Assembly (NCBI GenBank): GCA_973895155.1
Contig: OZ316898.1
Location: 9,411,079-9,475,078 of the forward strand
Source: Marsupella aquatica
Lineage: Eukaryota; Plantae; Marchantiophyta
DNA: 64,000 bases
Reading direction: 5' to 3'
The position numbers and the translations under genes are program-made. Shown in pieces: positions 7,593 through 44,913 of the stretch. Within the stretch, counting starts at the first letter, position 1; every line of letters begins with the position of its first letter. The notes beneath the pieces are model-generated. The model was not told the DNA's origin, did not search any database, and was given only the letters and a program-made list of their open reading frames with translations.

Positions 7593-7669
7593 TGTACTCG
7601 TTGTGATGGTTTTGGTATCACCAATACCTTACCATCACGTAGTACTCTCAAAAGATGGTTTCCTTCCCA

Positions 7670-8467: not shown

Positions 8468-8590
8468 AGGTTTAACAAGCTGGCTAAATCCTTTAACATA
8501 CCTCCTATACTAGCTCGCCAATCCCAAGAATGCACGAACTCTGCTCACATCAATAGGACGAGGAATCTGTGTAATGGCCTCCACTTTAGT

Positions 8591-9313: not shown

Positions 9314-9493
9314 GCTGAATGCAAAACAATTCTAGTAACTCTTTAGGAATTGATGCATGCGACGTCTCTCATCCCCTGTCAACTTAGGACCAATCTGTGG
9401 CTCCCAACTCTCCACCAGATCCCTAATATTTTTTTGTAGGGTAGAAGAGATAGCCGATGATTGCTATTTAGCAGTAGATTGAGCAGTCTCTTC

Positions 9494-23074: not shown

Positions 23075-23847
23075 CTAGCCCGATGCTTGTGCGTTGCACA
23101 AAAGATGTAGATCTAGGTGAAGAAAAAATGTTGAGATGAAAAAAATGGCGATGAGAGAAAAAGATGTCAAGGCGAGGACAAAACGTTGAGGTGAGGAAAT
23201 TATGGCAGGGTGAGAAAATATGACAAAATAATAAAAAGATAAGATATCAAGGTGAGAAAAGATGTTGAGGTGAAGAAGAGATGTTAAGCCAGGTGGAAAA
23301 AGATCTCGATGAGAAAAAGATGTCCAAGAGAGAAAATATGTGGAGGGTGAGAAAAAATGTCACGGTGAGATAAAGATGTCCATGTGAGAAAAATATATCA
23401 AGACAAGATAAAGATGTTACGGAGAGATATATATGTAAAGATTCAAAAAGTATGTCAAGACAAGAAAAGATGTCAAGGCCATGCAAAAACATATAATAAA
23501 TTTTGCAATATAGTTGTTGAGGCATGTTATGTGTGATGTTGAGGAATGTTATGTGTGATCTTGACCATGTAGCTGCTGTGGGTGTGTTTTATAACCCGTG
23601 TGTTGCACATAGAAATTGGAGATGCGAGATAGAGGCCACCACATCATAGAGTCCAAACAACCCCAATTTAAGGAAAACCGAACTTTGGAAATTCCGAAAA
23701 TCACTAAATATTATTATTTTAATAAAAAGGGGGCGACATGACACGTGGCTGCACGTGAAACCCTGAAAATGACTGCAACGTCACATTTTAACCAATCCAA
23801 CTTGACGGGACCAAGAGACATGCTCACGCGAATAATAATAATAGAGA
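23075..23847 (-). mobile_element. Probable non-autonomous Helitron
   Basis: The minus strand ends with hairpin ttgtgcaacgcacaa about 10 bp before CTAG|T (23075) and begins TCTCTATTATTATT at about 23847. The interior is a degenerate purine-rich repeat. Confidence 0.6.
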
Positions 23848-23926: not shown

Positions 23927-24655
23927 TTAATCTGATCTCATGCCGACTATTATTTTGGAAGCGTCCAAAATTGGGCGTCTGTTAAATTGCTCTACTAGAT
24001 ATCTATCTCCATGCCTCTGAATCACAGGGTCTTCCCATAGAGTATGATTATAATCATAATCTCTAAAAATAGATTTAACTAACCAATCAGGATAATCTCT
24101 TCCATTGGCAATGACAAGCGGCTCACAAGAGTTTGCTAGCTTGCTAAGATACGGAACCAGCAAGTTAATCAGGAAACTGTCGTCGACTGACCCAAAATAT
24201 TTGGGCGGAAATAATGATCCAACAACAGGATCTAAATAAGCATGAAATGCATCGGATTCGCTAAGCATTATATTTTGCTGCAGATACGCCTTCGTATAAA
24301 TTCCAACATTCTCAAAACACTTCACAAATATCCGCTTATTTGATGTCACCCCATCGCATAAGTAACAATGAGACTGATCCCAAATATACTTAAATGAGGC
24401 CATTTCCATCGCAATAAAAATAGATACTAAAATCTGATCTAAAAAGTTCTTCCCAAGAGAGGACCAGATCCCTACATCGAAATTCTCAAAATAGAATCTC
24501 AAGAATTCGAGAAGATGAGGCCTTGGAAAAACGTAGATATTCCCAATCCGAATTCCAGTTGAGACCGCCATCAGTCGGGAATGCGGTGCCGTGTAACAGA
24601 GTAGATGCTCCACGTCTAAAACTATGAGCCCATTTTCTCTGCTGCAATGAATCTC
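23927..24655 (-). CDS. FCP1/NIF-like domain 3
   Basis: LIVLDVE, FPRPHLLEFL, VGIWSS, YIWDQSHC, FVKCF and DDSFLINLLVPYL. Confidence 0.8.
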   Translation of the reverse strand, partial: EIHCSRENGLIVLDVEHLLCYTAPHSRLMAVSTGIRIGNIYVFPRPHLLEFLRFYFENFDVGIWSSLGKNFLDQILVSIFIAMEMASFKYIWDQSHCYLCDGVTSNKRIFVKCFENVGIYTKAYLQQNIMLSESDAFHAYLDPVVGSLFPPKYFGSVDDSFLINLLVPYLSKLANSCEPLVIANGRDYPDWLVKSIFRDYDYNHTLWEDPVIQRHGDRYLVEQFNRRPILDASKIIVGMRSD

Positions 24656-24747
24656 CTGTAGAGAAACACAAGAAGATGCATGAGCCCGTATGGATGTAGT
24701 CACGCAAATGGTCGCGTCACATATTATAGAGACAACATCCTCTACAC

Positions 24748-25426
24748 TCTGGCCATTGATAAGTGACGTCTGTTGAAGTGCTTGATAAGAACTTGATCCG
24801 CATGTCTCTGCACGTACAGATGCTCCCATATATCCTCGTTCAGATCCCAATCTCGATGTAGATTTCTAATCAACTAGATGGGATAATCAAACTTGTTAGC
24901 GAATGCAAGACAAAGCCCTGAATTTGATAGCTTTTGTAAATATGGAATGAGGTCATCCCTCAAAAAGACATCATCCAACGATCCTTGAAATGACTTAGCG
25001 AACAATAATCCGCATACAGCTGTCTGGCATGTATGGGAAGGACAGGCATCAATCTGGATTATATTCTTTGGTCGATAATCTTGAAACATATCACGTAGTC
25101 TCTCGATAGATTTGAAGACAACAGTCTTATAATTTTTCTTCACATAACCAAGATTCCAGCAATGATCCTGCGTGAACACATATATCAGCTGCGATAGGTC
25201 GGTGCTCGACAACACTTCTGAAAGTATCTGATAAACCAGTTTATCGTCGAGAATAGACCAGACCATCATATCAAAATGATCATAACAGAATTTTATAAGA
25301 TCATGAAGATACGGCCTCGGAACGACACATAGAGATCCGATATGAATTCCCGATGTCGACTTGAGCTGAGGAGTATATTTTGAAATAGAGCACAGGAAGT
25401 TGACGCGACCTGCTCCACTTAGACAC
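24748..25426 (-). pseudogene. FCP1/NIF-like domain 2 (degenerate)
   Basis: VPRPYLHDLIKFC, MMVWS, VFTQDHC, VFKSIE and DDVFLRDDLIPYL; paralogous to domains 1 and 3. Confidence 0.75.
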
Positions 25427-25561
25427 CTATAAATGAACAATTCGATTCTCATATTATGCAATTGCAAACAACCACGCGACCGGGCGCGTCACTCCCAAAA
25501 TATAAAGTTCAATTTCAATCAATTTATAAATAATAATTGATAATAAACAATAAACGTTTAC

Positions 25562-26821
25562 TTATTGGACTTATCCCGAGCTTCTATAGCACGGTCTTTT
25601 TCGGCAGATAAGTATTTCATAAATTCGTCAAACTTTTCTAAATGGTCTTTATTCCCCTTATTACGAATGATCACATTTCTCCTCCAAAGATTCGTCTTAT
25701 CAATATAATCTTTCTCAAGATTTTCTTGAGAGAACGTTGGAATCCCATATCCACTAAGGAGCTCGCGAAATGTCAACTTGTCAATTGACATGTCGCATAG
25801 ATATGGATATAGTTTCTTTCTAAAAAATAGGTCATCATCGAGCCCAGAATATGCAGGGGTATTTACAAACGGCAGGAAACAGCAAACAGTAACAGGAAAC
25901 AGAAACTGGTAACAGGAAATGAGTGGTAATTTTTTTGGAAATTTTTTTGAAATTTTTTTTGAAATTTTTTTTTGAAATTTTTTTTTTTGAAATTTTTTTT
26001 TGCTAGCGCCCGGCGCTGGTAATGCTAGCGCCCAAAGCTAGCCAAAAATGTTATAATTTAATTGTTTTTGGAAAATTTGACGTTTTAGAAAATATTTTGA
26101 CATTGTTATTTTTCCTGGTAAGAGTAAATTTTTGCTGGTAACAGGAAAATTTTTACTGGTACCAGTAAACCTGTTTCCTGTTTACTGTCACGCATGCCAT
26201 ACCCGAATATGCATCGGGATACAGCGATGAATAGAAGTCATTAAGGCTCGTCTTATATGCAGCGTCATCGATAAGAATGACATTCTCGATGTTGTAATCT
26301 TTAATATCGGCGACAATGTCGGAGAGACATTTGACAAATAAGGGGATGTCATTATTATTCTTCCCAATAAGTCGAGTTGATTCTTGTCCCCATATAAATT
26401 TAATACGTTTCAAAACTTCGGGTCAAAGTATCAGCCTTACACAAGATAGAATATTTTGTTTGAACATGCACGACCAGATCGCAATGTCGTATAGATCTGC
26501 CACCTTCTCAAGAAATTCCATTAAATCAGGCCTTGGATAGATAACCTTGTGCATCTGTCTCACACCCCTTGACCAAATGGGCATCCCAGGGCTGATCTTC
26601 TCTGACCAGATAAGTACCCGATTCAGATCGAAAATTACCAGTCTCTTCTGAACCGGTGACTTCTTTGCCGATGGATTAGGCGCCATTTGTACCTGTGATT
26701 TTTGTGCCGCAAGGTTTGGAGAACGTACTAGAACAGTCTGTTTGTTTCCCGCCTCCTGACGATCACCGGACTTCCGGACTGGTGCCTTCGATACTCGATC
26801 AGGGGGTTTCGGGATAGGCTT
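25562..26821 (-). pseudogene. FCP1/NIF-like HAD phosphatase domain 1, interrupted by a MITE
   Basis: LVIFDLNRVL, YPRPDLMEFL, IAIWS, FIWGQ and VILIDD. Removing 25856-26213 rejoins YPDAYSG-LDDDLFF in frame. Confidence 0.85.
25856..26204. mobile_element. MITE with 9-bp TSD (Mutator-like) inserted in FCP1-like domain 1
   Basis: TSD gaatatgca at 25847-25855 and 26205-26213; gggtat termini; inverted subterminal aacaggaaac repeats. Confidence 0.8.
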
Positions 26822-26907
26822 CTGTAAAACATGAAGAAATGAAAATAAGTTTATAACGCGAACGGTCGCGTGACTACAAAGAGAGACACTGAAATGAAGT
26901 GTATTAC

Positions 26908-27696
26908 CTGTACAAGATGGTCGTTCAGTGCTGGAATTCCGCCGGAAATATCAATCATAGCAACACGGATCCCGATAACTAGGTTACCACCGGACGTCGG
27001 CTTGCGGAAGTCCATGTCAAATAACGACAAGACTATCTCCCTACGGAATTTCTCAATTTGATCCGCGGCAAAATTAATTTTGTTTCCTTGACACAAGCAC
27101 TTGGCGTATCTCAAGATAAACACACCACAACTGCGGCCGTCACTTTGGTGAGGAATATCATTCCGATATATCCGTTCCCAACCTGAGAGATCCAAGTTGA
27201 CACCAGTTCTCCAGCCAATTTCGTCGGCGTAGTACTTTCCAACAATATCTAGCACCACAGGATTTTGTCGATTATGAACTAGAGAATCTAGGTACTCCAG
27301 CCGTTTCTCCTTCGGATACACAACTACCAATGACCAATATTCTTTCATAGCATTGTGTATTGGACAGACCAGTTTATCGTATTGACTGATTTTTAGCAGA
27401 AACTCCTTTGTCCAAGCTGCTCTCTCCTCGTCGAAAATGGTAGGATCCATGGAGAGAAGCTCAAAATGGTGTGTTTGGAAGAATTTGACAAGGTCTGACT
27501 TTCCAACTCTATCGAGAATCAGTTCGAGAAAACTCAAATAAACGTTAATTATATCATCGATGAGCAACTCGCGCGGTCTCAGACACATCATATATTTCCT
27601 CTTGATCGAGTGTTGTAAGAACTTGGTCAATAGCTCTTCCATATCCTTAGAAGGATCAAGGCATTGATCTATTCGACTAGCCAAATTTTCAAAAAA
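26908..27696 (-). pseudogene. Ulp1/SENP-like (peptidase C48) SUMO protease domain
   Basis: DDIINVYL, PIHNAMKEYWSLVVV (catalytic His now Tyr; TAT probably from CAT), YLDSL and QSDGRSCGVF. Confidence 0.9.
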
Positions 27697-28709
27697 CTGC
27701 AAAAAATAGAGATTTCAGTACGCCTTCAAATAACGTACTGAGGTTGTAGCCTAAGGGTTCTACCTCAGAAAACAAAAACAATAACAAATCAATAATAAAA
27801 TAATGACGTCTATAATAGAAACTTTAAGCTTATAGCTTGCGAATGACCTTTGGATTGGGTGGATCCGGCCTTTTCGCAGCTGATCTCTTGGGTGCCTCAA
27901 TCGCAACATCCTTCAGCCCTCCTCGAGACCGTAGTGATCGCTCCACCGGACCAGTTTGCAAAGGTTGGAGCGATGAGGCGGGAAGACCTTCAAATGGTTG
28001 TGGCATTTGATTGAAATATTCCACAATCTGGGAATCCGATTCCAAAATATCCGGTGCCACAATTTCTGCGCGAGTGACCTCTGCAATATATCGGGGTCGA
28101 GACCATGAACCCGGTCGCGTCAAGTCAGCTGTTAGTCTCTTAACGACTTGAGCCGAGTCTGGTGCCAAAGACGTTCCCAGGTCTTGCACTCGATTCTCGA
28201 AAAAGCAGACATTATTGATGATTGTCTCCATTCTGGATGCAGTGGCAGTCTTCTCCACGGTAATCAAAAGACCCTTCCAATATTGCAAAGCAAGGATTGC
28301 CTGGACCCGGAGCTGCTCCGGTGAATATTTATTCCAATCATCCAACGAGACCGTACTTAAGGGTGGATCGTTAAATTCAAACTCCGGGCGAAGAAAATAG
28401 TCTAATATTTTCTTCTTAACTGCAACTGAGGGTGAAGGAGGCTTCTTCAAATTCAGCCTTATTTTTGGTAGACGTTGTGCCTCAAGAATAAGCGAAAGAT
28501 CCTTGGCCCTCTCGGCCTCCTTCCTCGTTGCCTCCAGTCTTGCGGCTTCTTCTCTCTCCAGTCTTGCGGAATCAACCTTTTCCGCCTCCAACTTCTCCGC
28601 CTCCACCATCTCCGGTCTTCCGGTCTCGTTTGCCATCCTCTCGGCCAGCAGCCTCTCAGCTGCCACACTCTCTGCCTTGGCCCTATTTGCCTCTGTCACT
28701 AAAAGGACT

Positions 28710-29245
28710 CTCGCAGCCTCCGCTTTCTCAGCCTGGGCTTTCTCAGCCTCCGCATTCTCAGCCTCCGCTTTCTCGGCCTCCGCTTTCTCAGCCTGGGCTT
28801 TCTCAGCCTGGGTTTTCTCCGCCTCCCCTTTCTCAGCCTGGGCTTTCTCAGCCTCCCCTTTCTCAGCCTGGGCTTTCTCGGCCTCCGCTTTCTTGGCCTC
28901 CGCTTTCTCAGCCTCCGCTTTCTTAGCCTGGGCTTTCTCAGCCTGGGCTTTCTACGCCTGGGCTTTCTCCGCCTAGGCTTTCTCCTTCTTCTTCGCGGCA
29001 GTTGCTTTTCTAGCTGCTGCCTTTTTCTTCTTAGCCTCCTTCTTTTGAAGCGCCTCTTGCCGGGCCGCCTCTTGTCGGGACGCCTCCTCCTGCCGGGCCG
29101 CCTCCTTCTTTTGAAGCTCCTCTTGCCGGGCCGCCTCCTGTCGGGCCTCCTCCAGCCGGGCCTCCTCCAGCCGGGCCTCCTCCTGCCGGGCCGCCTCCTG
29201 CCGGGCCTCCTCCAGCCGGGCCTCCTCCTGCCGGGCCGCCTCCTC
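28710..29245 (-). repeat. 15-bp coding tandem repeats encoding (EEAARQ)n- and (AEKAQ/E)n-type helical linker
   Basis: gcctgggctttctca / gcctccgctttctca and ccgggccgcctcctg repeats, in frame with ORFs 28973-29485 and 27830-28699. Confidence 0.85.
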
Positions 29246-30109
29246 TCGGTCCACCTCATGTCGAGGCTCCTGTGTGGCCTCTTCATCAGAGTCCTCAACA
29301 TCCTCAGAACCCTCCATCTCCTCGTCCTCTTCATCAGCGTCCTCAGCGTCCTTCATCTCCTCTCCGTCACTCTCTTCATCTCCTCTATTGTCGGAATCTC
29401 CGATGTCGTTCTGCGTATCGGTCATCCACTCTGGATCTTGGTCATTGACATCCCCATCTGCGTCACCTTCTGCATCACCTTCCATGTCACCTTCCCCCTC
29501 ACCATCCGAATCACCATTGCTCCCTGCATCCTCAACATTGAAGCCGCAGTCGACTTGATCTGAATAAAATCAAATCATTTGATAAGAATGACTCACGCGC
29601 ATATTCGCGTGAAAAGAAATGTTATGAATGTCCACGCGCTTGTTCGCGTGACGCAATAAAAAGTAAGAGGTTTCAAAAGTAACCTACCTTGGATTGGCCC
29701 ACTAGGGTACTCCGTTGGTCGAATGTACAATCAATCAGAATCTTCAGAGAGTGCATACTCTTGCAATAATTGATTACAAATATTATCAGGGATATGTTGT
29801 TCGTGGAGGACATCCAAAAGATCATCCCTGAGAGCAGTTATGGATGGACGGTACTTCATTAATTTATCTATACATTTTTCTATACTAGCCCGTACTGGGT
29901 CAATCAATGACAACGTTGTATCAATTGTCGCCGTGGTGTGTTGCAAGAAACAAGACAACTCCCTATGCGTTGCCACAGGGCAGTAATATTTTACATTGGA
30001 TCCAGCATCCTGTAAAAAAAGCCAAAATTAGTTCACAATATTAATTGAGAATATAATAATCTAAATAATCTTAAAATCGAAACCCCAAAATATAAATCTC
30101 AAAACTTAC

Positions 30110-31414
30110 CATTAAGCACTGGATCAAGTTCGTTCCCTCATCGAAGCATATAGCCCATTCCCCACATTGGACGAATTGACTAACAATACTTTCAAAGAAT
30201 GGAAGTATCTTTTATGGGGAAGGTGTCGTGAACTTGCCGCTCTCTTCAAAATTGGCTATCTTCTCAATCCGATATTTGGAGACCAATTGGAACTCGAGGG
30301 CTTGTGGATCGCCCATTGTGCTGAAGGCCAAGCTGTGAAAAGCGTAGGTTACAATAAGCTTCTTCTCCTTTGGCCGCTTCTGAATATAATGGCTATCGAC
30401 AGCAACGTAGTGTGTGTACTTCCCTAATTCCGGTTTGATTAAGTAAGACTCAACGGGAGAGGCTACAATAATAACCACATGGTGTGGTTTTGCCCCTATC
30501 TCGCTAGTAGCATGAAATAACCCCTCATAGAATGAGCAATTTGGCGGACGCAAATCTCCCATTGATGAGGGATCAAAATAAATCAAGCTCGCAAGGTTCT
30601 TGTCTTCACGTATGATACATTCTACAAACCCAGCATTTTTTATATCATGCAGGGATCGCAATTTCAGCCTCTCACCGACCGACCGCACTAGTTGGTTTCC
30701 TTGACTATCAACTGATTTATGTATTCCTTCCACCAACCTATAGAATATTGGGTCGATCTCTTTCAACAAATTATCATTACTAATATTTACAATTAAGCAC
30801 TTCTTCAGATAACCACTCAACGCATCTCTCAACTGCTTCAGCACCATCTTGTCGAGCTTAAAGCGATCAATCATTCCTTTGACCCGCAATTTCCGCGTTG
30901 AATCTGTCAGACTTTTCAGCTCCGTCCGGGTGGATGTATCCCCGTTGAGTTTACTCAATAATAAAATCTCAAACTCAACTTTCGTCTTCTTCTTTATACA
31001 GAATTGCTCCAAACTCATGCTGGTCGTTGACAACACTGGAGCCTCAGAGGACTTCCTCGCCTTCCCAGATTTCACTTTGATGCTTTGGTTTTTGAGTATA
31101 GACAGTCTTCCGCTCAACATATATTCCGCTGCCTTTTGAAGAACCGAGTCTGAGCACCCTTGACAAGAACGGAACGTCTTCTTCAGAAGATGATAAGCAC
31201 ATGGATTATCCGCAATTTTGACGGTGTCCCTCTGTAAAATTCCGTTGTAAATTACAAGCTCTCCTGTCCTTGATAGTTCGTAGACCTCCATCCACTTCTT
31301 GAATGTTTCATCCTCCATTGTAAAGAGAAATGGAGCCAATTCTCCAAATTTCATCATTTCGTTCTTCCCCATTTGAGCCCATGGGCAAACAAAACTCGTA
31401 GCTCTCATAAATAC
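30110..31414 (-). pseudogene. Exon 2 with degenerate beta-class N6A/N4C methyltransferase-like domain
   Basis: ASLIYFDPSS sits where DPPY is expected. P*KILPFFESIVSQFVQCGEWAICFDEGT resembles QKP..L....I......GD.VLDPF.GSG, in beta-class order. Confidence 0.45.
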
Positions 31415-31513
31415 CTGAAAAACAATGGAAACATGACAATTCTAAGCTTGACGCGACCGTTCGCGTGACAAAAGTTTAAACGATAATGTGATCGAAGAGG
31501 GTTATTTATATAC

Positions 31514-32752
31514 CTTCCAATTTGGATGACGATAATGTGATCCAGGCCGCCCAAATGAGTTCCAGATATGACGACACTGTCGTACAATGGTGAGAAATTG
31601 TCCTTCTTCCATTGATGTTTGATGATAGTGGTTCAGAGCTTTCGATAATCCCATCAAATGAACATTATTGTCGTTGTTGAGCGTTGCCCAAAACATTACA
31701 CCTTCTACAGTACCGCAAGCGTCTCGTACAACTTGGCTGACTTTGTCATCCTCTTTCAGCAATTTGTACGCCATTATTGTGTGCTAGCCTCCGAGTATCC
31801 AAAAATGATTGGTCATAATGTCCTCCTCCTTTGGCGCCGAATCGTAGGGCGCCCCATTGTAGTCAGGATCTCTGTCGGCCTCCGACTGAACCCACTTCAC
31901 AAGGACTAAAAAGCAGCATCGCTTTTTGAACTTTATAGCCGAATGAGAGAGGAGTGAATTCTTTAGCCTATCTGTGTAATCCTGATTCCACTCTCGGCAC
32001 TTGATGTGGTCCGGTGCAAGATGACAACGTGATGTCTCAACAAAAAATGACTTGCTGTTAAATATATTCACAGCACTATATTCTTTGAGGAAAGAATCGA
32101 ACAGAGCCCCGACATTTGCTGAGGTAATTACTTTCAGAAGATTCTCCACCGAGTATACTTCAACCTTGCTCACTGGCGGGGCCTTTCCCAAGCGAAATCA
32201 CTGGTTGAAAGGAACTCTCTGGAACTCAAGTACGTCAATAATGTATTGACAAATCAAATCTCCCGTTGATCCCTCTGGATCGGAAGGATATCCCACACTA
32301 GTAACCTTTTCCAAGGCGTGCCTTGCACCTAGAAGATCATCGATTCTGGGCTGATTGAAGGTTACATATTGCGTTCGATCCAAACAAATGCTTATTTTGT
32401 CATCCTACTGGTCGTCGCTGACTAACAGAACCAATCCCTCTGTACACTCTTTAACTTTCATGTTCTTCTCAAAGAAACACCCAAGAATTTGTGATCTCTC
32501 CAAAACTGTAGCTTTATCATTTTTTGCCACCACAAGACGGACAGCCCCATTGCGAACGACTATTCCAAAATCGGATATCTCAGTCGATTCAAAGAGATGG
32601 ATACTCTTTGTCTCCGTTGTTCTCTCTCTGATTGACTTTCCTCGATATGCAAGTATGGATGTCTCCGTGGGAGTCATTTTTGTCTTGGCTTTCTTACGAG
32701 AAGCAGCTTTGGATGAGTCTCTTTTCCGCTTTGAAGTTCCGGTAGGATCCAT
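31514..32752 (-). pseudogene. Exon 1 with ParB/Srx-like domain
   Basis: Four in-frame ORF pieces. CREWNQDYTDRLKNSLL...FWILGG*HTIMA restores to GGQHT, resembling the ParB G-x-H-R/T motif; followed by ALNHYH. Confidence 0.6.
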
Positions 32753-32863
32753 TCTGAAACAGACAAATATTGAAAGTTAAACGTTTATTATAAAATACTA
32801 ACATGCGCATGGTCGCGTCGTGCCGAATTACATTTTAGGAATGTTTATCCTGACCCAATCTTC

Positions 32864-33358
32864 TCACTCATCTTCATCTAACCAAAACCAAAGGTTCCTA
32901 AACGTCTCAAGTTCAGATCCTTCAAATCCACCCAGAATGTCCAGCGGCGAGAGAGTTTTGATGGATTCTGTAAATCTTAATGCTACACTCCATGAAGTCA
33001 AATGCCTTCGAAGCAATTCATATCCTGGTCTATCAGTGAAGTCGTAAGCTACCAAGGTGACCATCGCCCAAGTACTACTATAAGTAACTATGTGGCACCA
33101 CTTCTTCCTGACTGTTTGAATGGCGATCAAGTCCATGTCCCAATTTTTAATCGCAGTATCCGACAAATTTCCAAGACAGTGGAAAAACTCTTTGACTAAT
33201 GGCCAAATATATTTCTCGACAATATCGTCCGGAAGACCGGGTATCAGGTCTTCAACTTGACTCCATATCATGTTTTGGTTGATAACCTTTGCACGTGCAA
33301 TGCGCTCCATCATCATTTGACGATGAGATTTTCGATTCATGTCAAAGGACTGCAGCAT
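32864..33358 (-). CDS. F-box-like protein 1
   Basis: LIPGLPDDIVEKYIWP...TVRKKWCHIV, resembling the plant F-box motif. Confidence 0.65.
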   Translation of the reverse strand: MLQSFDMNRKSHRQMMMERIARAKVINQNMIWSQVEDLIPGLPDDIVEKYIWPLVKEFFHCLGNLSDTAIKNWDMDLIAIQTVRKKWCHIVTYSSTWAMVTLVAYDFTDRPGYELLRRHLTSWSVALRFTESIKTLSPLDILGGFEGSELETFRNLWFWLDEDE

Positions 33359-33754
33359 AATATGGAAAAGATTAAGAACAAGAACCTATCCATTAAGAAT
33401 TGGGACCACCTAGATTCTGAGAAAATCTACCAAACCTTTCGATTAGAACATCTCGTTCTTCCTCAACTAAATTGTTATATTTGTTCGTAATCAATGCGAT
33501 TTTGTCAGAAGTAGTAGTCCCAAGAACAGATATTTCTGGAAGCATAGAAATATCCTGTCGACTCAGGGGTCTCACTATATGGGGACCTACCCATCACCTG
33601 CGACGTTTTTAGGCCTCGGACCCCCTAAAATGTAAGAAAAAATTATTATTTTTTAACCCCTATAAAGTTGGAATATTCTTGGAATATTCCAAAAAATGGA
33701 CTAAAAAGGCCCTAATGTTCTTATAAGTCTCAAAATTGAATTTAAAAGACCCTA

Positions 33755-34264
33755 TTATTCTTCTACAAAAATTCTTAAGTCTTCCCTTACAACCAATAAA
33801 ATGACCCTATCCTTCGTCGCACGTGATATGCCATTTTTGTGGAAGTGAAACCCCCGAGCCTGTCGAATAACTCGACAGACTGAGTCAAATTCCAACTCGC
33901 CAATTTCGGGTATGTCGTAAAGAGCTTCATTTGCGACATCGACAATCCAGTTTGCTTGTTTGAGGATAGCCCATAACCTTGTATTTGTAACTAAAAAGTT
34001 CCACTTCTTGCTACAAGCTCCAAGCCGAATAAGGTCTCGGACCCTATCGATAACCAAATCGTTATCGAGGTATCGATATCCACGCAATCTTTCAATTGAA
34101 ATAAAGTGTTCGTAGAGTATTGGCCAAATGTTTGAAATGACCAAAACATCTGGTATTCCTCCAATGAGACTAGAGGAGGTTTCATCCAGCGTATCCCATA
34201 TTGTTTTCTGTTTCCTTTCATGAGATGAAAGGAAATCTTGAGCCTCATTCAAACGTTGGCTCAT
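33755..34264 (-). CDS. F-box-like protein 2
   Basis: LIGGIPDVLVISNIWP...ACSKKWNFLV. Confidence 0.6.
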   Translation of the reverse strand: MSQRLNEAQDFLSSHERKQKTIWDTLDETSSSLIGGIPDVLVISNIWPILYEHFISIERLRGYRYLDNDLVIDRVRDLIRLGACSKKWNFLVTNTRLWAILKQANWIVDVANEALYDIPEIGELEFDSVCRVIRQARGFHFHKNGISRATKDRVILLVVREDLRIFVEE

Positions 34265-34329
34265 CCTGCTTTTATCATATCACAAAACATTGTTAGAAGA
34301 CATACGACGCGCTTGGTCACGTAAGTTAA

Positions 34330-34911
34330 CTAGAATTCCTTAAAAGCGTAGATGTCAGCCTCAAGGTATCCAACTTCGTGGCATCTGACTATAAATTTCC
34401 ATTTTTCAAGAGGGTGAAGAGCATCGTAAGTCTTCGTCAAGAGTTCCCTAAGATCTCTGGACATTGACCCCATGAATTTAATTCTTGGGTATTTCTGGAA
34501 GAAACTTTGAACTGTCGATGAGAGAGACTCATTTCCGATCGGTTTAGTAGGATTTCGTGGGAAAGCCAAATCTAATAAACTCAACTTGATTACACCCAGA
34601 AGATAGGTATTCCCAACAAGGTGGCGCCATCTGCGACACACCGAAGATAGTCCTACAAACTCATCCAATTCCTTTATTGAGAAATTTCCTGCATTAGCCA
34701 AGGAATTAAAAGTCTCCTTGATCCGAGGCCATATCAATTCTGCGACAATGAAATCTGGAAGTCCAGGTAGTAGTGTTTCAACAAATACAGAATATCCCGC
34801 CAGTAGACCATCTTGGCTTCTGTCCAAAACGTCAAATATTGGGCATAGATATCTGAAGCTCTCCAGACCAAGTTCGCCCATGACTCTTTTCAGCCAAATG
34901 ATATATCCCAA
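34330..34911 (-). CDS. F-box-like protein 3
   Basis: LLPGLPDFIVAELIWP...SVCRRWRHLV; start codon uncertain. Confidence 0.65.
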   Translation of the reverse strand: MGYIIWLKRVMGELGLESFRYLCPIFDVLDRSQDGLLAGYSVFVETLLPGLPDFIVAELIWPRIKETFNSLANAGNFSIKELDEFVGLSSVCRRWRHLVGNTYLLGVIKLSLLDLAFPRNPTKPIGNESLSSTVQSFFQKYPRIKFMGSMSRDLRELLTKTYDALHPLEKWKFIVRCHEVGYLEADIYAFKEF

Positions 34912-35021
34912 AGATTATTTTCACGCGACTGGTCGTGTCTACAAATCAGAATGTATAAACAATTCTTTGAGAGACTGTTTTTTTTGGGTCACAACATGAC
35001 AAATCATAAATGTTGCTTCGC

Positions 35022-37463
35022 CCTCTAACAGAACCAGTCAATGAGAGAGCTACCTTAGACGCGACTGGTCGCGTCAACTGATCCTAAAAGGAACCTTACC
35101 TCCTCTAACAGAATCAGTCAATGAGAGCTACCTTAGACGCGACTGGTCGCGTGAACTGGTCCTAAATGAAACCTTCCTTCCTCTAACAGAACCAGTCAAT
35201 GAGAGATCTACCTCAGACGCGACTAGTCGCGTCAACGGCTCCTAAAGGAACCTTACCTCCTCTAACAGAACCAGTCAATGAGAGAGCTACCTCAGACGCG
35301 ACTGGTCGCGTCAACTAAACCTAAACAACTATATCCACTGAACCTTCTTTGTGGATATTTGGATATGGTACGCGCTCAGTAAATCTATCCAGTTTCCTTC
35401 TCACACGCGATTGGTCGCGTCAACTGGTCCTAAAAGGAACCTTACCTCCTCTAACAGAACCAGTCAATGAGAGATCTACCTCAGACACGACTGGTCGCGT
35501 CAACTGGTCCTAAAAGGAACCTTACCTCCTCTAACAGAACCAGTCAATGAGAGAACTACCTCAGATGCGACTGGTCGCGTCAATTGAACCTAAACAACTA
35601 TATCCACTGAACCTTCCTTGTGGATATTTGGATATGGTACGCGCTCAGTAAATCTATCCAGTTTCCTTCTCACACGCGACTGGTCGCGTCAACTGGTCCT
35701 AAAAGGAACCTTACCTCCTCTAACAGAACCAGTCAATGAGAGAGCTACCTCAGATGCGACTGGTTGCGTCAACTGAACCTAAACAACTATATCCACTGAA
35801 CCTTCCTTGTGGAGATTTGGATATGGTACGCGCTCAGTAAATCTATCCAGTTTTCTTCTCACACGCGACTGGTCGCGTCAACTAGTCCTAAAAGGAACCT
35901 TACCTCCTCTAACAGAACCAGTCAATGAGAGATCTACCTCAGACGCGACTAGTCGCGTCAGCTGCTCCTAAAAGGAACCTTACCTCCTCTAACAGAACCA
36001 GTCAATGAGAGAGCTACCTCAGACGCGACTGGTCGCGTCAACTGAACCTAAACAACTATATCCACTGAACCTTCCTTGTGGAGATTTGGATACCCTGGGC
36101 CCTCACTCTTACTATATTAAGTGAACCCCCCTGAGAACAGACACCCCCCGTGTACCCCTTCTTAATATTTTTGTTCACAAAAACAAATCCCTTGTTAATG
36201 TAAAAACATTATTTTTTCCTATAAAAATTTATCCTTTTGTAAATTATAACAGAGTTTTTCAAGGAATTAAAAAAACCCTTGAATTTTTAAAAATTGTAAA
36301 TATCATACTGAAACATAAAAGATTCTATTTTGCAGAGGGGAATATTATGTTACGCTGATGTTCACGGTACATATTTTATATAGATCATAACAAAATTAGT
36401 ACTAAAGATTTATAGTTCTTCCTAGAGTATATGACTATAACTCAGGCAACTTGTAGACCTCATAGAGATAAATTGAACTAGTACAAAGGCATTATTATGC
36501 TATGCTATATCCTTGGAGGAATAATTGCATATATACTACTTATGTAAACTCCAATTGCTAAATTATTCTATCTTGACTAAGAATGGTATGACATCAACCA
36601 TTAACACCAAATGATAAGTAGAGTTTTTGGCAACTTCTTTCATGCAACCTGACACATCAAACCACACATTAATCATATATAGTCTAGACACAAAGTAATA
36701 ATAATACAAAAAATGACTACTGAAAATTGTGGAGAGTAATACCATCAAATCTCCTTTGGCTGAAATTGTTACTTAGACATGGTGGGTAATTTTCCTGCCA
36801 TCTCTACAATCAAACAACTGTGAGCACCGGGTACCCCCCCCAACCCAATGATCAAGGCTCGGATCAAGGGAGTACACCACCCCACACACAAACACACCTG
36901 GCCTCATACCTGGCCATTTGATTTGAGGGAATTCAAAAGTAATCTTGTTTGTCTATGTGGGATTGATTCATGGGTCCCCATCAATCCCAGAACCCCAAAG
37001 GAGTTGGGCCCCAAAATCCTGGCCCAACATTTACTTAACTCCCAACTTAACACATGCGGGTAAACAAGTCTACCATGCAAGCCCATGAAACCAAACTTGC
37101 CTTAAGAGGATAAATAATTAAATGTCTGATTTACTATATGGACATGTGTGCCAATGAAGTGATGACATGTGTGCCAACCATATAGTGACACGTGCCCTTG
37201 GCATTTTAGGTACCCTTGCATAAGATTAATGTGACATGTATTTGATAAGAGCCTTATTACTAATATTGTGATGAATGTATATACATGGATGTTGCCTACT
37301 TTAAAAAATATTATAAAAATTAGTTTGCATTACATTAAAAATACCCTTGCATTGTTCGCACGTCCTCCCTGCATTAGTAACGCTGAGGGCCCAGGGATTG
37401 GATATGGTACACGCTCAGTAAATCTATCCAGTTTCCTTCTCACACGCGACTGGTCGCGTCAAC
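35022..37463. repeat. Compound tandem array (~80-bp and ~110-bp units), each unit with ACGCGACTGGTCGCGT; interrupted by a 1.3-kb insertion
   Basis: Repeated ctctaacagaaccagtcaatgagag..ctacctcagacgcgactggtcgcgtcaact; the array resumes at 37397. Confidence 0.92.
36093..37396. mobile_element. Non-autonomous TIR element (1304 bp) with 8-bp TSD
   Basis: TIRs ccctgggccctcactcttacta / tagtaacgctgagggcccaggg; TSD tttggata / attggata; splits an array unit. Confidence 0.85.
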
Positions 37464-40400
37464 AGCTCAAACAACTTTTGGACACTAGGATAATACAGTG
37501 ATACAACTGTGATTACTGACCCGTACGGACAAGGAAATCCGAGTAAGCATGATTTCATTCATTTGTATTCATTCATTTGTATTCATTCATGAACTTTACA
37601 ATAATTCAGATGTTTGAGCTCTGTCATTGTGAAACTATTATATATCAGAAGTTTAGAGAATGATTTAGCTAAGATGATTCAATTTAGCAGTCTACTGGTT
37701 GTATTCGTCAATTAAAGGATTCAGTGTAATAAGATTCACATAACATGAGAGTTTATATGATTAAATTCACAGCGTGCAAGTTTGTAATGAGTTTGTAATG
37801 AGTTTGTATGATTCACACATATTTGAGTTTACAAACAAACCGCATTATGAAAACTCAGCTTAACAATCAAGAGAAATTTTAGCAAACAACAATCAACACC
37901 AGCAGAAAATGTAGAAATTGCATCTGAATTTTGAAAAATTGATGTAATCGTTTGAGAGATTGACGTCCAAGCACTTGAAGACCTTGCTGCGGCATCCAGA
38001 AAGTATATATAAGATTGAAGATATTAATATGCTAAGCAACAATAACACAGCTTCTATACTTCTATACATAGAGCTTCGCTGCCACCAATTGAATAACATG
38101 TGCTTAATGCTAAGGAACTCATTATGTCGAGTTAAAAAGACTCTTTCAGAAGTACAATCAAAGTTGTGGATAGGCAAACTGAGCATGAATAAAAGCACAC
38201 TAAACCTGAAGATTCAAAGAGGTGAAACAAACCTGAATGCTGAATGGAAGGAGCTGAAACAAGCTGCCAAAAAGTAGTTCGAGCTGTTGAAACACGTTGA
38301 TCGAGCTGATATGAGCTTAAAATTGGCTGACATGAGCTGATATGAGCACTCCCAAAAAACTAGCTGCAACGAACCCAACGGGCTCCTAAGAATCTTTTCG
38401 AGCAAACTAGAAGTGAATACGAGCTGTAAATGCAAGTTGCAACGCGCCAACGAGCTCCTGGTCGAAACGATCGACAACTACTAAGAGCTGCAATGCGCCG
38501 ACAAGCACCTGACCGCAACGAACGAGCTACAATGACAAAAATGAAATCCAGGGCAGGAGCGAGAGCGACGAGAGCGAGAGCGATGAGAGCAGGCGCGCAA
38601 AAGTCTAGGGAGCGAGAAACAACAATAATGAATAGTGAACTCGAGACCGTGGGCGCCAACACTAAGGAAGGACTAATTAGGGTATTGTTTTAGCATAACC
38701 CTAATAACAGCCGAAGGTTCCAGATGATCTCCATACACTCCACCATCGACTGAACAAACTATGCAATCGTGAAAAAAAGATTACCGGATTCCTTTTGATT
38801 TTCCGTACTAAAGGAGATTTCTATTTGATCGCCAATTTGAAATTTAAACCGGTAATTATGCAACTGCGAAAGATTGTTAGTGGGGACCCCCAGATCCGGA
38901 TCCGGATCCGTATCTTCACTATATCTGCCAATTCAAATCCAAAATGTGAACGAACGACAACTTTCTCACGATCGTTCCATCACGTAGTGGAGGCGAACTT
39001 CAAAATCAGTCCATTTTGGTAGTGGAGACCGTCGGATCCGGATCCGTACTCCACTCTCTATCTTGCCAATTCAAACCCATACTCTAAACAAGGTAAAACG
39101 ATTCTCACAGTCGGGGAGAACCAATATTCAAAATCAATCCTGTACAATGATTCTCACGATTGGAGACTCAACCAATTTTCAAAATCAAAATCGAGTCCAG
39201 ATGAACACATCCTTCATGGAGTCAATAGACTGATCTCATTGCTCATGGATCATTCTTCATTTTCAGTTTCTCCTTACCAGGATACTAGCTGGGCTCTCAG
39301 CGGAGGCTGATCCAAGGCACATTTGAGGTGGAGCAGATTGGATCATTCGACTATTCCAGTCGGAGGCGGAGCTCATTCAAGCAACGCTGGCGTAGTTCTT
39401 GTTGTATCACCTTCAATCTTGGGGAGACCACATCCGATCAAGCGGGAGAGTTGCGACGAAGCGAGACGACAAACATTTAGAACCTCCATAGTCTGCCTCA
39501 TTCATCGAAGCATTCTAGCGGACCAACAAAGAGCGGCTATTCTGAAATCACTGTCTGGTCGAGGATTTTGATCTTGATACGATCAACAAGTTGTCATTCT
39601 CTGGTGGTGGGATTCGGTCACGATACTCAAGGAAATTGGAGTTCGAAGGAGGAGGCTTAGTTGGCTGGGACGAGGAGGCTACGCTGGAAGGAAGAGGCTT
39701 GGCTGGGAGGAGGGTTTCCGCCAACATCGAAGGGTTGCCGCCAACATTGCTGAGACCACACGCAACTGAATAACTTGTAAGTATCAATCAGCATTAATTC
39801 TGCAATAAATGAGGAGAGTAGTTGCCTTAAATCACGCATTCAATGCATGAGGTCCAATTTCTCACTCTGATTTTGATCAATCCGTGTTTCATGTCCAATA
39901 CAGAAGCAATGTATCAGAAGTACTAGTAGAGGATCCGAATGAATTCTCTAGTCTAAAATTGTATGGCGTTCAAGTATAGTTGTCCGTACGTTTTGCTATT
40001 GTTTATTGTAGTCGACGGCCTAGCAAAACTAAACGTAATCGAGGTCCATTTTTCAGATCAAACTGATCTCAACTTGTTAGTAGGATGACCTGATTTTTCG
40101 GTTACACATGTAGTTCATCACGTGCACAATCGCGTGAACCAATTTATCTCGTGTCTTTTGATATTGTTTATTGTAGTCGACAGCCTAGCGAATTGGCCAG
40201 CAATCTATTTTAAAACCAACGTCTTCATTTTATCATGCGCACGGTCACGTTAATGTTTTAGAGGTCAGCGAAAGCTCTGCACTCTTCAACGTAATCGCCC
40301 TTTATTTACGGACCTCCATTAGGGGTCTCTTGCAAATTCTCTGCCATGAGGTTGCGCCACATCATCACAACTAGCCACAAACAGGAATGATCCTACTTTT

Positions 40401-41790
40401 AACAATAACAAACGTGCACATACTTGTTTGTGGCAAAAGCAACGTAATTTTTGGGGCGCCATGCCGTAAATATTAAACGTAAAAAAACCAAAATACAAAG
40501 GAAGAGATGTCATTTAGTAAAACAAAGTTACCATTTTGATGTTTGTCAAAGATATATCAGTGTTTTATATCAAAATGCTTGTATTTTTTAATTGTTTGCA
40601 AGTTTGAAAAAATCAATCGATAGAAATGTACATAATTAAAACCCATTTGGCTTCACATTGTAAAACTAAATAATAAATCTCCTTAGTACTTGATAAAATT
40701 TGCCAATGTTTGATTCATTGGAAAATTCAAGATCAAGATTTAGAAACTCGTGATCTCTTTAGTAATGTCTTGATAAAATCTCTCAATGTCACTCATTGGA
40801 AAGCTAGAGTAAAATTAAAAACTCATCATCTCCTTAGTACTTGACAAAATCTATCAATGTTAGGTTCATTTGAAAGCTAGAGAAATTTAGATACTCATGA
40901 TCTCTCTATTTCTTGACAAATAATCTCAATGTCACACATTAGAAAGCTAAAAAGATTGAAAGCCTCTTGATCTCTTGAGTACCGTGACAAAATCTGACAT
41001 AAAATTTGTAAATGTCAGACTCAATGTTAGAAAGCTAAAAGAATTCATGAACTCATAGTCAAAATTTCTTATACTAACACTCATTGGAAAGGCAAAGATA
41101 TTCAAAAACTCATATGGAACTTGACAAAATTTGTCAATTTGAGGCTCATTGGAAACCCTTTCTCGATTAAGAGATATCACAATCTCATCACCGTCACAAA
41201 CTTAGCCGCTACAAATTGATTTCTTTGATTATGTCACCATCGCTTGTCCACAATGCTTGCTTCCCGGCTTGAATTGTTCGCATCTCTTAGATAGTCTTCA
41301 ACTAAAGCTCACTCTAAACACAGGTTGACGCCAAATGCAGCCTCTATGTCAAAGAAACAATTGTTGGTCTTCCCCTCACACCATAGCTTTCTTAAATAAA
41401 AATAACTACAAATCCTTTGTTTGAAGTGACGGCTCTTTCGTTTTGTGTGTTCTTCCCACCAAATTGACAAGCGTTTTTTTGCCAACAACTGAGTGTTGTG
41501 CTCTAGATTGTCTTGTGGCAGTAATGCTCAATGTAACTCACAAACAATCAATCAAGAATGGTTGAAAGATGATTTCTCCAATGTGTAAGCAAAACCTATA
41601 AGAAAACTCAATTCCTCCACATTCAACCTTCCATTTGATAAATCTCTATCTTTTGAGCATTTGTTTTTGTACGAGCACACACCAACACCATCGAGAGACT
41701 CAAAACCGTTGGTTACCGTCTTGATGAAAATTGATTTCACTTAATCACACAAACATTCCTTGGATGAACATGGGGGTCCACGGATTAATT

Positions 41791-42955
41791 CTCAGATCTT
41801 CCTGATCTCAACTTGTTAGTAGGATGACCTGTTTTTTGGTTACACATGTAGTCTATCACGCGCACAGTCGCGTGAACCAATTTATCTCATGTCTTTTGAT
41901 ATTGTTTATTGTAGTCGACAGCCTAGCAAATTGGCCAGAAATCTATTTTTAAACCAAGGTCTGTGTTTCATCACTCGCCCGGTCGCGTTAATGTTTTAGA
42001 GGTCAGCGAAAGCTCTGCACTCTTAGACGTAATCGCCCTTTATTTCTCAGATCTTCCTGATCTCAACTTGTTAGTATGATGACCTGTTTTTTTGGTTACA
42101 CATATAGTTCATCACGCGCATAGTCGCGTGAACCAATTTATCTCGTGTCTTTTGATATTGTTTATTGTAGTCGACAGCCTAGCGAATTGGCCAGCAATCT
42201 ATTTTAAAATCGAGGTCTGCATTTCATCACGCGACCGGTCACGTTAATGTTTTAGAGGTCAGTGAAAGCTCTGCACTCTTAGACGTAATCGCCCTTTATT
42301 TCTCAGATCTTCCTGATCTCAACTTGTTAGTATGATGACCTGTTTTTTTGGTTACACATGTAGTTCATCACGCGCATAGTCGCGTGAACCAATTTATCTC
42401 AGGTCTTTTTGATATTGTTTATTGTAGTCGATTGCCTAGAGAATTGGCCTGAAATATATTTTAAAACCGAGGTCTTGGTTTTATCACGCGCCCGGTCGCG
42501 TTAATGTTTTAGAGGTCAGCGAAAGCTTTGCACTCTTAGACGTAATCGCCCTTTATTTCTCAGATCTGCCTGATCTCAACTTGTTAGTAGGATGACCTAT
42601 TTTTGGTTACACATGTAGTTCATCACGCGCACAGTCGCGTGAACCAATTTATCTCAGGTCTTTTTGATATTGTTTATTGTAGTCGATTGCCTAGAGAATT
42701 GGCCAGAAATATATTTTAAAACCGAGGTCTTGGTTTTATCACGGGCCCGGTCGCGTTAATGTTTTAGAGGTCAGCGAAAGCTCTGCACTCTTAGACGTAA
42801 TCGCCCTTTATTTCTCAGATCTGCCTTATCTCAACTTGTTAGTAGGATGACCTATTTTTGGTTACACATGTAGTTCATCACGCGCACAGTCGCGTGAACC
42901 AATTTATCTCAGGTCTTTTTGATATTGTTTATTGTAGTCGACAGCCTAGCGAATT
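41791..42955. repeat. Tandem repeat, ~256-bp unit x ~4.5, two palindromic ACGCG-N6-CGCGT sites per unit; a further copy at ~40065-40305
   Basis: Unit starts (ctcagatct) at 41791, 42046, 42302, 42559 and 42814. Confidence 0.92.
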
Positions 42956-43202
42956 GTCAGTCAGAGAAATCTCAATTTTTCCTTGATTGCAAAAATGGTT
43001 ACATCGATCCCGAAGGACTTCGGATGTGGAATCCATATCCACTAGCACTATCCAGGAATTTAACTGACCTGGTCTTTCGAACACTATTTTCCACGGGACA
43101 AAATTAAGCTACACAATATCTATAACAAGTTCTAACTTGAACTACTCTTGAATCTGTAGTTCTAATCTTTGACTACTCAAAATATTGTTGACTTTGATCG
43201 AG

Positions 43203-43745
43203 TCAGTCATTCCAAGATGAAGGCATCCACTCATCGGTGTCTGGTGTGGATTCCCTTGAATCCAGAAATTCTTCCTTTGCCCAAGTCCTAACGTCCATAG
43301 ATTTTCTCGGCTTGCTCTTTCTGTAATACAAATCAGAATCTTCGTTCATCTCTAATTGCCTTTTCTTCGGTGCGTCCACTTTCTTGGCCTCCTTCTTGAC
43401 TGTCTTAGCGTCTGCTGCTGCTTCCCCCGAGATGGATTCGACGCATGCTCTGGCCTTCAACTTCTCCCCCCTCGAAACGGATTCCATGAGGGCTTTGCCC
43501 TTTAACTTCTCCCCTGATGCCATCTTTGTAGTCATCTTTGTTGGATTGGTCTCCATCTAATCTTCCATCGACAAATGTGGCGAACAATGTCGTCTCTCAC
43601 AAAACATTTGACTCGATTTAGTCATCGTAAACATTATATTACATCGCTGACACATTCTGTAAGGAGTACCACGAATTCGATACGTCGAACCTTCTGAATC
43701 GTCCGTCGGAACATCCTCATTCTTCGAGCTCAGTGGAGTAGTCAT
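43203..43745 (-). pseudogene. Small ~180-aa hypothetical protein with CxxC...Cx4C motif and Lys-rich tail
   Basis: ORFs 43557-43745 and 43203-43556 are in frame across a single TAG; CQRC...CERRHC. Confidence 0.5.
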
Positions 43746-44913
43746 CGCCCTTCAAACAAGAGATGCGGACCGAGACTAAGAATTGGAAATGAGAGAGCTG
43801 ATGTGCGAATAGATTATCCAATAGCCAGAAAGTGGAATGCATGGGGGAATGAGCAGTAGGGATCATCTCAATGCTTTATACTGTTTAGTCTTCACTAGTC
43901 ATTGTACATAGTGGTTTCTAGAAGAGAGTGCGCGTTTGACTTGCGCGTATTAGAATTGGCGGGAAGTTCAGTTGTCCTCTAATTATGGCTTTAATTTCAC
44001 GTTTGGCGACCGCCCCGAGAATACTGATTGCTAGTGAAGTACTGAGATTTCTTATGAGGATCAGTAGTTACTGACTGTCCGGTGTCCACTCATTGGTAAA
44101 CTAGTACTGTCCACTCATTTTTTCTGAGTGGAGTTGAAATGATTGTTCGTAATCGATTGTAGTCATTCTCATTCACTTGAAATGATTGACGGACCATGCA
44201 TAATCTGTTACCGGTATGTGTGATGCCTTTAGATCCGTAATTGTATCTTCCTGTCTCACGCGCAATCGTATCTTACTTATGAAGTACCAAGTATGAGCTA
44301 GAGTTTGGGCCTAGCCTTCTAGCTTCTACATCGTAGACCCTGTTATCCCTACACCCTCTGACTAAGGTCACGCGACATGCCTTTAGATCCGTAATTGTAT
44401 CTTCCTGTCTCACGCACAATTGTATCTTACTTATGAAGTACCAAGTACGAGCTAGAGTTTGGGCCTAGCCTTCCAGCTTCTACGTCGTAGACCCTATTAT
44501 CCCTACACCCTTTGACTAAGGTCACGCGACTAGTCGCGTGCAGGGCAGTGCATTGACTACATTCCGCCTACTTATTGACGGTCGTGATAGGACAATGTAG
44601 TTCACGGACATTTTACTGGCGCTTATTAGCATTACCGTCCTCAATAGTTACTGATTGTCCACTCATTTGTTTTGAGTGGATGTGAAATGATTGATCGTAA
44701 TTGATTGTGGTCGTTCTCATTCATTTGAAATGACTGACGGACCATGCATAGTCTATTGCCGGTATGTGTGGTACCTCTAGGGTCACGCGACCAGTCGCGT
44801 GCAGCACAGTGCATTGACTACATTCTGCTTATTGATCGACGTGACAGGACAGTGCAGTGAAATTGACGGACGTGACAGGACTGTACACTTACTGTGATAT
44901 TCTCTGATGTGCA

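Follow-up and report, generated by a model that had tools for sequence, protein, structure and literature searches.

The 64,000 nucleotides of Marsupella aquatica DNA analysed here (contig OZ316898.1; the whole stretch is referred to as the window) contain one dead copy of a high-copy cut-and-paste transposon of ~25 kb, and a palindrome of 18-20 bp recurs inside this element. Related elements carry palindromes of different sequence at homologous positions, and a large helper gene of the element, transcribed away from the transposase gene, encodes a domain that by structural modelling has the ParB/Srx N-terminal fold. Combining these data, we tentatively suggest that the palindromes are docking sites for a dimeric, sequence-specific protein encoded by the element, with the helper protein as the candidate binder.

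A palindrome confined to one giant DNA transposon

Exact matches to ACGCG-N6-CGCGT occur 23 times in the window compared to an expectation of 0.00 in 100 dinucleotide-preserving shuffles; with up to one mismatch there are 33 copies compared to 0.14 expected, the highest value in any shuffle being two. All 33 copies fall into the range 24702-44800 and none is present in the ~39 kb of the window outside the element; CGCG-containing pentamers are likewise enriched in the palindrome-bearing range. The original prediction of about 35 palindromes confined to ~24701-44801 is borne out by these counts, its coordinates being within 1 bp of ours. Extended outwards, the consensus reads T-CACGCGAC-YR-GTCGCGTG-A, a palindrome of 18-20 bp. 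In 8 of the 10 one-mismatch copies the difference is a CpG transition and, therefore, we read these copies as decay of once-perfect sites.

As had been proposed, many palindromes reside in two tandem arrays: array 1 (~80-bp period) holds 12 and array 2 (255-bp period) holds nine, two per unit, and the palindromes at 37444 and 40120 are dispersed copies of array units. The palindromes at 44524 and 44785 are located in a duplicated 65-nt segment, 399 and 138 bp ahead of the transposase ATG (44923), i.e. directly upstream of the transposase as anticipated. Given the arrays, the dispersed units and this duplication, there are only ~12 independent sequence contexts with unrelated flanks, which is still far above chance. 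Among the other copies, 32803 is in the promoter of the helper gene, ~50 bp ahead of its ATG, 34307 and 34923 lie between F-box-like open reading frames (ORFs), and 29595 and 29634 lie in a gap between ORF blocks of the helper gene; the rest, apart from the copy in intron 1, are found between ORF blocks or in the tails of ORFs, outside Pfam-matched domains. Both termini of the element are free of palindromes with up to one mismatch for 1 kb (the distances to the nearest are 1.0 and 4.0 kb), and the terminal inverted repeats (TIRs) are unlike the palindrome. Because the palindromes are internal and unrelated to the TIRs, we conclude that they are not cleavage or synapsis sites.

A single TIR pair encloses every palindrome and delimits an element of 25,147 bp, in agreement with the giant DNA transposon that had been predicted. 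The TIRs begin AACCCCAATTTAAGGAA, are identical at 17/17 terminal positions and alike over ~68 bp, and have no further copy in the window; a nested cluster of several elements is ruled out by this single pair. The AAAC on both sides is a possible 4-bp target-site duplication. CpG is not depleted within the element (CG/GC ~0.55-1.2) and is depleted in most of the neighbouring DNA. The layout is that of two divergent genes, the helper gene (minus strand, 32752 to 23927) and the transposase gene (plus strand, 44923 to 48290), that flank a ~12-kb centre containing three weak F-box-like ORFs and both palindrome arrays:

23659-23726, plus strand: left TIR (17/17 identical termini), flanked by AAAC
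26426-26686, 24874-25467 and 23927-24850, minus strand: three NIF/FCP1-like phosphatase-fold segments (PF03031, E 2.6e-6, 6e-10 and 1.2e-11)
26851-27702, minus strand: Ulp1/C48 SUMO-protease domain (PF02902, E 1.4e-16)
28700-29976, minus strand: small conserved exon and an acidic, Lys/Arg/Glu-rich low-complexity (coiled-coil-like) region with 15-nt repeats
30080-31414, minus strand: conserved region of helper exon 2, 53% and 48% identical to P0001 and P0002
31415-31513, minus strand: helper intron 1, 99 nt, GT..AG, phase 0, with the palindrome 31451-31466 in its middle
31514-32752, minus strand: helper exon 1, 413 codons, collinear with the related locus L001, its stops aligned to sense codons
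32864-34911, minus strand: three paralogous F-box-like ORFs (F-box E 0.004, under the Pfam cut-off)
35022-36052: tandem array 1, units of 78-109 bp, 12 palindromes; dispersed unit at 37398-37468
41785-42956: tandem array 2, 255-bp units, nine palindromes; dispersed unit at 40030-40348
44108-44841: repeated promoter-proximal segment of the transposase gene with the palindromes 44524 and 44785
44923-48290, plus strand: DDE transposase gene, Pfam DUF7869 (PF25273), E 3.9e-37
48736-48805, minus strand: right TIR, then AAAC

The contigs of three public runs were compared with the window stretch 29.5-35.4 kb (5,901 nt). They contain thousands of fragments 88-99% like this stretch, and the element family is therefore high-copy. 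Within this stretch, a segment of ~305 bp among the F-box-like ORFs (33554-33858) has a contig depth 25-60x that of its surroundings; at both of its edges many contigs continue into unlike sequence, and one family contig passes directly from 33553 to 33859. A short element of very high copy number seems to have inserted here, nested in the transposon and missing from some family copies.

The transposase is probably of the Sola1 superfamily: only Pfam DUF7869 was matched, and the name is given by likeness to Sola1-1_Ec32 of Ectocarpus. The hallmark of Sola1 is a 4-bp target-site duplication with AWWT preference (PMC3845634); the AAAC direct repeat next to the TIRs, seen in one copy only, is 4 bp but not AWWT. 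Among named proteins, those of the liverwort Calypogeia fissa are most closely related to the transposase, with 62-65% identity. The gene has an intron at about 46834-46991, and a literature search under 'DUF7869' found no papers.

Related elements carry their own palindromes at the same positions

We compared the window with six related loci, three of which (L003, L004 and L007) are from C. fissa:

L001: helper gene; window-type palindrome CCACGCGACTGTGCGCGTGA and two degenerate neighbours ~100-180 bp before the first ATG in the exon-1 frame (3491); intron 1 has a half-site only
L003 and L004 (C. fissa): only the transposase gene in common with the window; palindrome CACGA(A/G)CCATGG(T/C)TCGTG
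L005: DUF7869 transposase remnant; ~21 copies (up to four substitutions) of the 20-bp TATCGGGTGATCACCCGATA upstream, at L005:552-4568
L007 (C. fissa): helper gene; palindrome CACACACCATGGTGTGTG / TCACACACCATGGTGTGTGA upstream, in intron 1 and downstream
L008: helper gene; palindrome GTGAACCATGGTTCAC upstream, in intron 1 and further on

Thus, five lineages (window/L001, L003/L004, L007, L008 and L005) each have their own palindrome at homologous positions. In the window, L007 and L008 a palindrome is located in the middle of the first intron (~95-100 nt) of the helper gene, and in the window, L001 and L007 a palindrome is located ~50-600 bp upstream of the helper coding start. L004 has 12 exact copies of CACG-N10-CGTG, of which 11 are directly upstream of the transposase gene (6566-7598) and one is in its intron, while L003 has two palindromes upstream of the transposase gene and imperfect copies in the intron and downstream. 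The window and L001 share the type CACGCGAC..GTCGCGTG; at the same positions other relatives have palindromes centred on CCATGG or GGTGATCACC in place of CGCG. Variants in C. fissa include CACGAACCATGGTTCGTG and CACACACCATGGTGTGTG, and two lineages in this one host differ in their palindromes (CACGAACC versus CACACACC). Between lineages both arms change symmetrically, which is what the site of a dimer would show.

The C. fissa loci L003 and L004 share only coding similarity, and no convincing TIRs were found at either; each has a one-sided boundary, formed by a Ty3 element at L003 and by a Mutator-like element (MULE) at L004. The latter (L004:14251-18822) has a MULE-like transposase gene (DDE and SWIM-like CxC..CxH) that is flanked and interrupted by a 24-bp palindrome, ATTGTTAGCGA-NN-TCGCTAACAAT, in five good copies; its ends were sought and not found. 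The plant contig of L005 also carries a xyloglucan fucosyltransferase-like gene. Near the C. fissa helper locus, L007:17978-18181 is 44% identical in protein over 68 codons to 36077-36280 in the apparently ORF-free centre of the window element, which may be a decayed additional gene of the family.

The helper protein has a predicted ParB/Srx-fold domain

Helper exon 1 is a single continuous exon, collinear with its 48-53%-identical relative L001, and encodes in order an NLS-like (nuclear localization signal) start, a weak PH-like region and a ParB/Srx-fold domain (FWILGG*HTIMAYKLL). All searches were run exon by exon, with the pieces on either side of stop codons kept apart and without any spliced or joined protein. 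A word-based homologue search with a 135-aa piece of exon 1 gave no match, and a full HMMER scan recovered the intact exon-1 homologues P0004-P0006. In an AlphaFold 2 model of P0004, built with the family alignment, residues 240-390 have a pLDDT (predicted local distance difference test) score of 80-93. Foldseek with this model gave Noc, sulfiredoxin, ParB-CDP (ParB with cytidine diphosphate) and PadC as top matches (probability 0.94-1.0). Similarly, alignment with VIA-align to Myxococcus xanthus ParB-CDP (7bnk_A) gave a Z-score of 8.2, a level that is 'middling' by the program's own scale, with a root-mean-square deviation (rmsd) of 3.0 A over 95 residues, and its first 22 matches are all ParB, Noc, KorB, PadC, pNOB8 ParB, Atu1540 or sulfiredoxin. 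Because this run of the family is unbroken and covers the whole domain, we consider the assignment credible: the conserved domain of helper exon 1 is, as modelled, of the ParB/Srx N-terminal fold, and a ParB-superfamily domain is thus supported in the helper protein. The AlphaFold check suggested in the original prediction has in this way given the fold that was looked for. Ahead of this domain, P0004 residues 66-207 (~ window 32560-32140, minus strand) are modelled as a beta-sandwich and helix (pLDDT 50-64) with weak matches to the PH-like domains of Tfb1, Pob3/SSRP1 and Rtt106 (Z 3.5-4.9), which we regard as a lead only.

The following exon is less informative. The AlphaFold 2 model of exon 2, made from five sequences, has a mean pLDDT of 45 and no meaningful Foldseek match, and ESM Atlas gave no usable match for pieces of exon 1 or exon 2. 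Given that this model is too poor, the suggestion that exon 2 is methyltransferase-like is neither supported nor refuted. Downstream of it, Pfam confirms the proposed deSUMOylase and phosphatase-like domains as an Ulp1 C48 domain and three NIF segments, although their catalytic residues are degenerate in the window copy.

The window copy is dead

The helper gene and the transposase gene of the window copy both have nonsense mutations. In exon 1, in-frame stops are present at 32405-32407 (TAG), 32198-32200 (TGA) and 31784-31786 (TAG), the last being inside the key motif (FWILGG*HTIMAY versus FWLLDGQHTIMAY in L001), and the exon 2 ORF ends in a stop (30212-30214) found in the window copy only. 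Two in-frame stops, after 45174 and 45510, interrupt exon 1 of the transposase gene. At position 32407 family contigs have a G, so that the codon is CAG (Gln), and at 30214 all of them differ by A>C; hence, at least two stops are private to the window copy. An alternative genetic code was considered for these stops and rejected: Gln is found in L001 opposite just one of the three stops of exon 1, the standard code leaves the long exons open, and the sense codons at two of the stops in family contigs are further evidence against it. The claim that palindromes lie in five introns needs revision; only intron 1 was verified, whereas the 'introns' placed inside 32752-31505 are in-frame stops in one continuous exon.

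The effector modules have also decayed. The catalytic His of the Ulp1 domain is Tyr in the window copy (27290-27320; EYWSL versus KHWSL in L001), a replacement that fits a C-to-T change, as do most differences between the window copy and family contigs. The DxDxT motifs of the NIF segments read DLNRV and DVEHL.

A candidate reader encoded by the element

Based on these data, we suggest that the helper protein may be a dimeric sequence-specific binder of the palindromes, a reading of the sequences to which we give somewhat less than an even chance. Such a protein would combine the ParB/Srx-fold domain and the conserved exon 2 region with the Ulp1 SUMO protease and the FCP1/NIF-like modules. In this model, (i) the protein would bind at its own promoter, in the first and other introns of its gene and at the arrays between the divergent genes, (ii) binding would allow recognition of copies of its own family, and (iii) recognition would lead to action on the chromatin or transcription of these copies, i.e. 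anti-silencing or autoregulation. VANC in Arabidopsis and KorB on plasmid RK2 would be the analogues, and DNA partition is not an expected role. We favor the helper protein because its gene and the surroundings hold seven palindromes, among them the conserved promoter and intron-1 sites, and because ParB-like genes are linked to inverted-repeat arrays in an unrelated superfamily (Plavaka PAG3). Sites have grown in number by tandem duplication, as seen in the two arrays and in other family copies from contigs of the three runs, in which the intron-1 segment 31438-31472 including the palindrome is a 35-bp tandem duplication.

Several observations weigh against this reading. Pfam and NCBIfam searches with window pieces and intact homologues (E up to 10; one search up to 1) matched no ParB family, nor did a PDB profile search with the family alignment (E up to 10) match ParB. 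The CTP (cytidine triphosphate)-binding arginines of GERRxR (box II) are replaced, all family members having (G/D)GQHT(I)(M/E/A)AY at the strand-to-helix turn, the equivalence of GGQHT with box II being one of secondary-structure position only. This turn is closer to GGCHR of sulfiredoxin and to the DGQHR motif of DndB-like proteins than to GERRxR. A ParB helix-turn-helix was not seen either: the structural matches stop at P0004 residue ~401, equivalent to ParB residue ~132, where the helix-turn-helix of ParB would start, and the model of the next exon is the poor one described above. With GERRxR replaced and no helix-turn-helix seen, a CTP-gated sliding clamp is therefore not supported. Thus, of the predicted ParB-like protein the fold stands, whereas the CTP motif is replaced, neither a helix-turn-helix nor a sequence-profile match to ParB was found, and loading and spreading of the bacterial type is not supported. 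Further points on the same side are the lost C48 His and the degenerate NIF motifs of the window copy, the palindrome in the transposase intron of C. fissa, the private 24-bp palindrome of the L004 MULE, beside which no ParB-like gene was seen, and the palindrome arrays of L003, L004 and L005, which have no ParB-like gene in the 7-10 kb on either side.

The last point makes the transposase equally available as a binder. Alternatively, then, the palindromes might be bound by the N-terminal region of the transposase, which has a CCSEHCC zinc motif and could be a regulator of cognate copies or bind accessory sites; in that case the ParB-like protein would have no sequence specificity itself or would work via the transposase. 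Palindrome arrays adjoin the transposase promoter in the window (44524, 44785 and array 2) as well as in L003, L004 and L005. Repeated motifs bound by the transposase are present in many DNA transposons, such as those of En/Spm TnpA and of Ac. In addition, transposases are described in a preprint as potential autonomous sequence-specific activators of cognate copies (Sasaki et al. 2026). However, the palindromes are neither terminal nor subterminal and are unrelated to the TIR, the transposase gene of the window has none inside it compared to seven for the helper gene and its surroundings, and inverted-repeat arrays are also found in unrelated superfamilies that have ParB-like cargo. Moreover, the 7-10-kb flanks are shorter than the 12-kb spacing of the two genes in the window, and the absence of the helper gene at L003, L004 and L005 is limited to those flanks. 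We regard binding by the transposase as less likely than not, but only somewhat less likely than binding by the helper protein.

Host transcription factors are an improbable third possibility. The palindromes could be sites for CAMTA (CGCG-box) or for bHLH/bZIP factors (CACG-type) gathered as promoter or enhancer modules, and it fits this idea that the window motif includes vCGCGb and CACGCG cores and that palindromes are found in promoters and first introns. Against it, the palindromes of relatives at the corresponding positions lack CGCG, C. fissa has two lineages that differ, the entire 18-20-bp palindrome is conserved beyond a 6-bp core, and the 39 kb outside the element have none. Conserved positions, symmetric sequence change and two types in one host therefore argue that the putative binder is not a host CGCG-box factor, the CAMTA-like alternative raised in the original prediction being thereby set aside, and that it is dimeric, encoded by the element and co-evolving with its sites. 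Marginally less probable still are palindromes without any protein partner, i.e. hairpin-forming or recombination-prone repeats spread by replication slippage, or small-RNA sources, which would fit the tandem arrays and local duplications but not the ~12 independent contexts with unrelated flanks, the intron-1 and promoter positions, which are kept across lineages whose proteins are ~50% identical and at which the sequence itself changes symmetrically, or the 18-bp stem, which is too short for a Dicer substrate.

Comparison with known systems

A eukaryotic ParB/parS-like system is not a novelty of the element described here, in that one was already proposed in 2025 for red- and brown-algal transposons. 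In the red alga Bostrychia moritziana, Plavaka PAG3 has a ParB-like accessory gene with inverted-repeat arrays (Petroll et al. 2025, bioRxiv 10.1101/2025.02.11.637652), and in Ectocarpus the 21.5-kb Sola1-1_Ec32 has a ParB+DNA-methylase gene opposite the transposase (PMC12477816); in both papers the accessory protein was proposed to bind and modify its own transposon. The algal elements and the element in the window are alike in being giant (>20 kb) cut-and-paste elements with an accessory gene opposite the transposase, in the fusion of an N-terminal ParB-like domain to chromatin- or DNA-modifying modules, and in nearby inverted-repeat tandem arrays that differ between families. They differ in the host, which is a land plant (a liverwort) here, in the effectors, which are Ulp1 and three FCP1/NIF-like modules here compared to a 2OG (2-oxoglutarate) oxygenase or an evident methylase there, and in that palindromes here occur scattered over introns and promoter as well, the intron-1 site being conserved. 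What sets the element here apart is, thus, the land-plant host, the Ulp1 and FCP1/NIF effector set, the intron-dispersed sites with a conserved intron-1 site and the replaced CTP motif.

The VANC proteins of VANDAL elements (MULEs) in Arabidopsis have target motifs in the non-coding DNA of their element that grow as tandem repeats (Hosaka et al. 2017, PMC5735166). The predicted likeness to VANC targets is evident in the palindromes, which lie in non-coding DNA, have grown in tandem and diverge between related elements, all under a factor that is likewise encoded by the element (putatively so here). By contrast, the VANC motifs are short and non-palindromic, the superfamily is another one, and hypomethylation has been shown for VANC. 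As far as we are aware, VANC is not a ParB-fold protein.

Likeness to bacterial ParB/parS and KorB/OB consists of the ParB/Srx N-terminal fold (Z 6.8-8.2 to ParB, Noc and KorB) and of multiple 16-20-bp palindromes dispersed over a mobile element including its promoters; the OB operators of RK2 are palindromic KorB sites dispersed in this way over the plasmid. The differences are the change from GERRxR to GGQHT, that neither a helix-turn-helix nor a C-terminal dimerisation domain was recognised, that no ParA partner was seen, and that an element integrated in chromatin has no need of partition. Finally, subterminal repeats bound by transposases (the 12-bp motifs of En/Spm TnpA and the hexamers of Ac) are similar in being many copies of a family-specific motif, some as inverted pairs, whereas the sites described here lie inside the element at a distance of 1-4 kb or more from its ends, are located in introns and the intergenic centre, and are unlike the TIRs.

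Neighbouring sequences

Outside the left end of the element, a tandem array of 72-81-bp units (21014-21337) has in each unit an imperfect palindrome, GACACGTCC...CGTCGTGTC, and these may be private sites of a neighbouring element. Farther away, 6339-10231 on the minus strand is a retroelement with reverse transcriptase and an integrase ending in a PHD finger.

Significance

Mechanistic detail on how transposons recognize and protect themselves exists for very few systems, VANC in Arabidopsis being the main one, and ParB-like accessory genes beside inverted-repeat arrays have so far been noted only in algal genome papers, as a hypothesis. The family described here offers a high-copy example in a land plant with intact homologues in public reads, a defined 18-20-bp site and natural specificity variants across lineages. 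In its most far-reaching form, which we consider doubtful, the model would be that a ParB-fold reader of a private, fast-evolving palindrome delivers a swappable effector (SUMO protease and a module like the phosphatases of the polymerase C-terminal domain, CTD) that keeps the copies of the family transcribed, and that this arrangement evolved independently of VANC. If true, it would be a eukaryotic, chromatin-level counterpart of operator control by KorB/ParB and, if the binder carries Ulp1, it would link SUMO removal to the anti-silencing of transposons.

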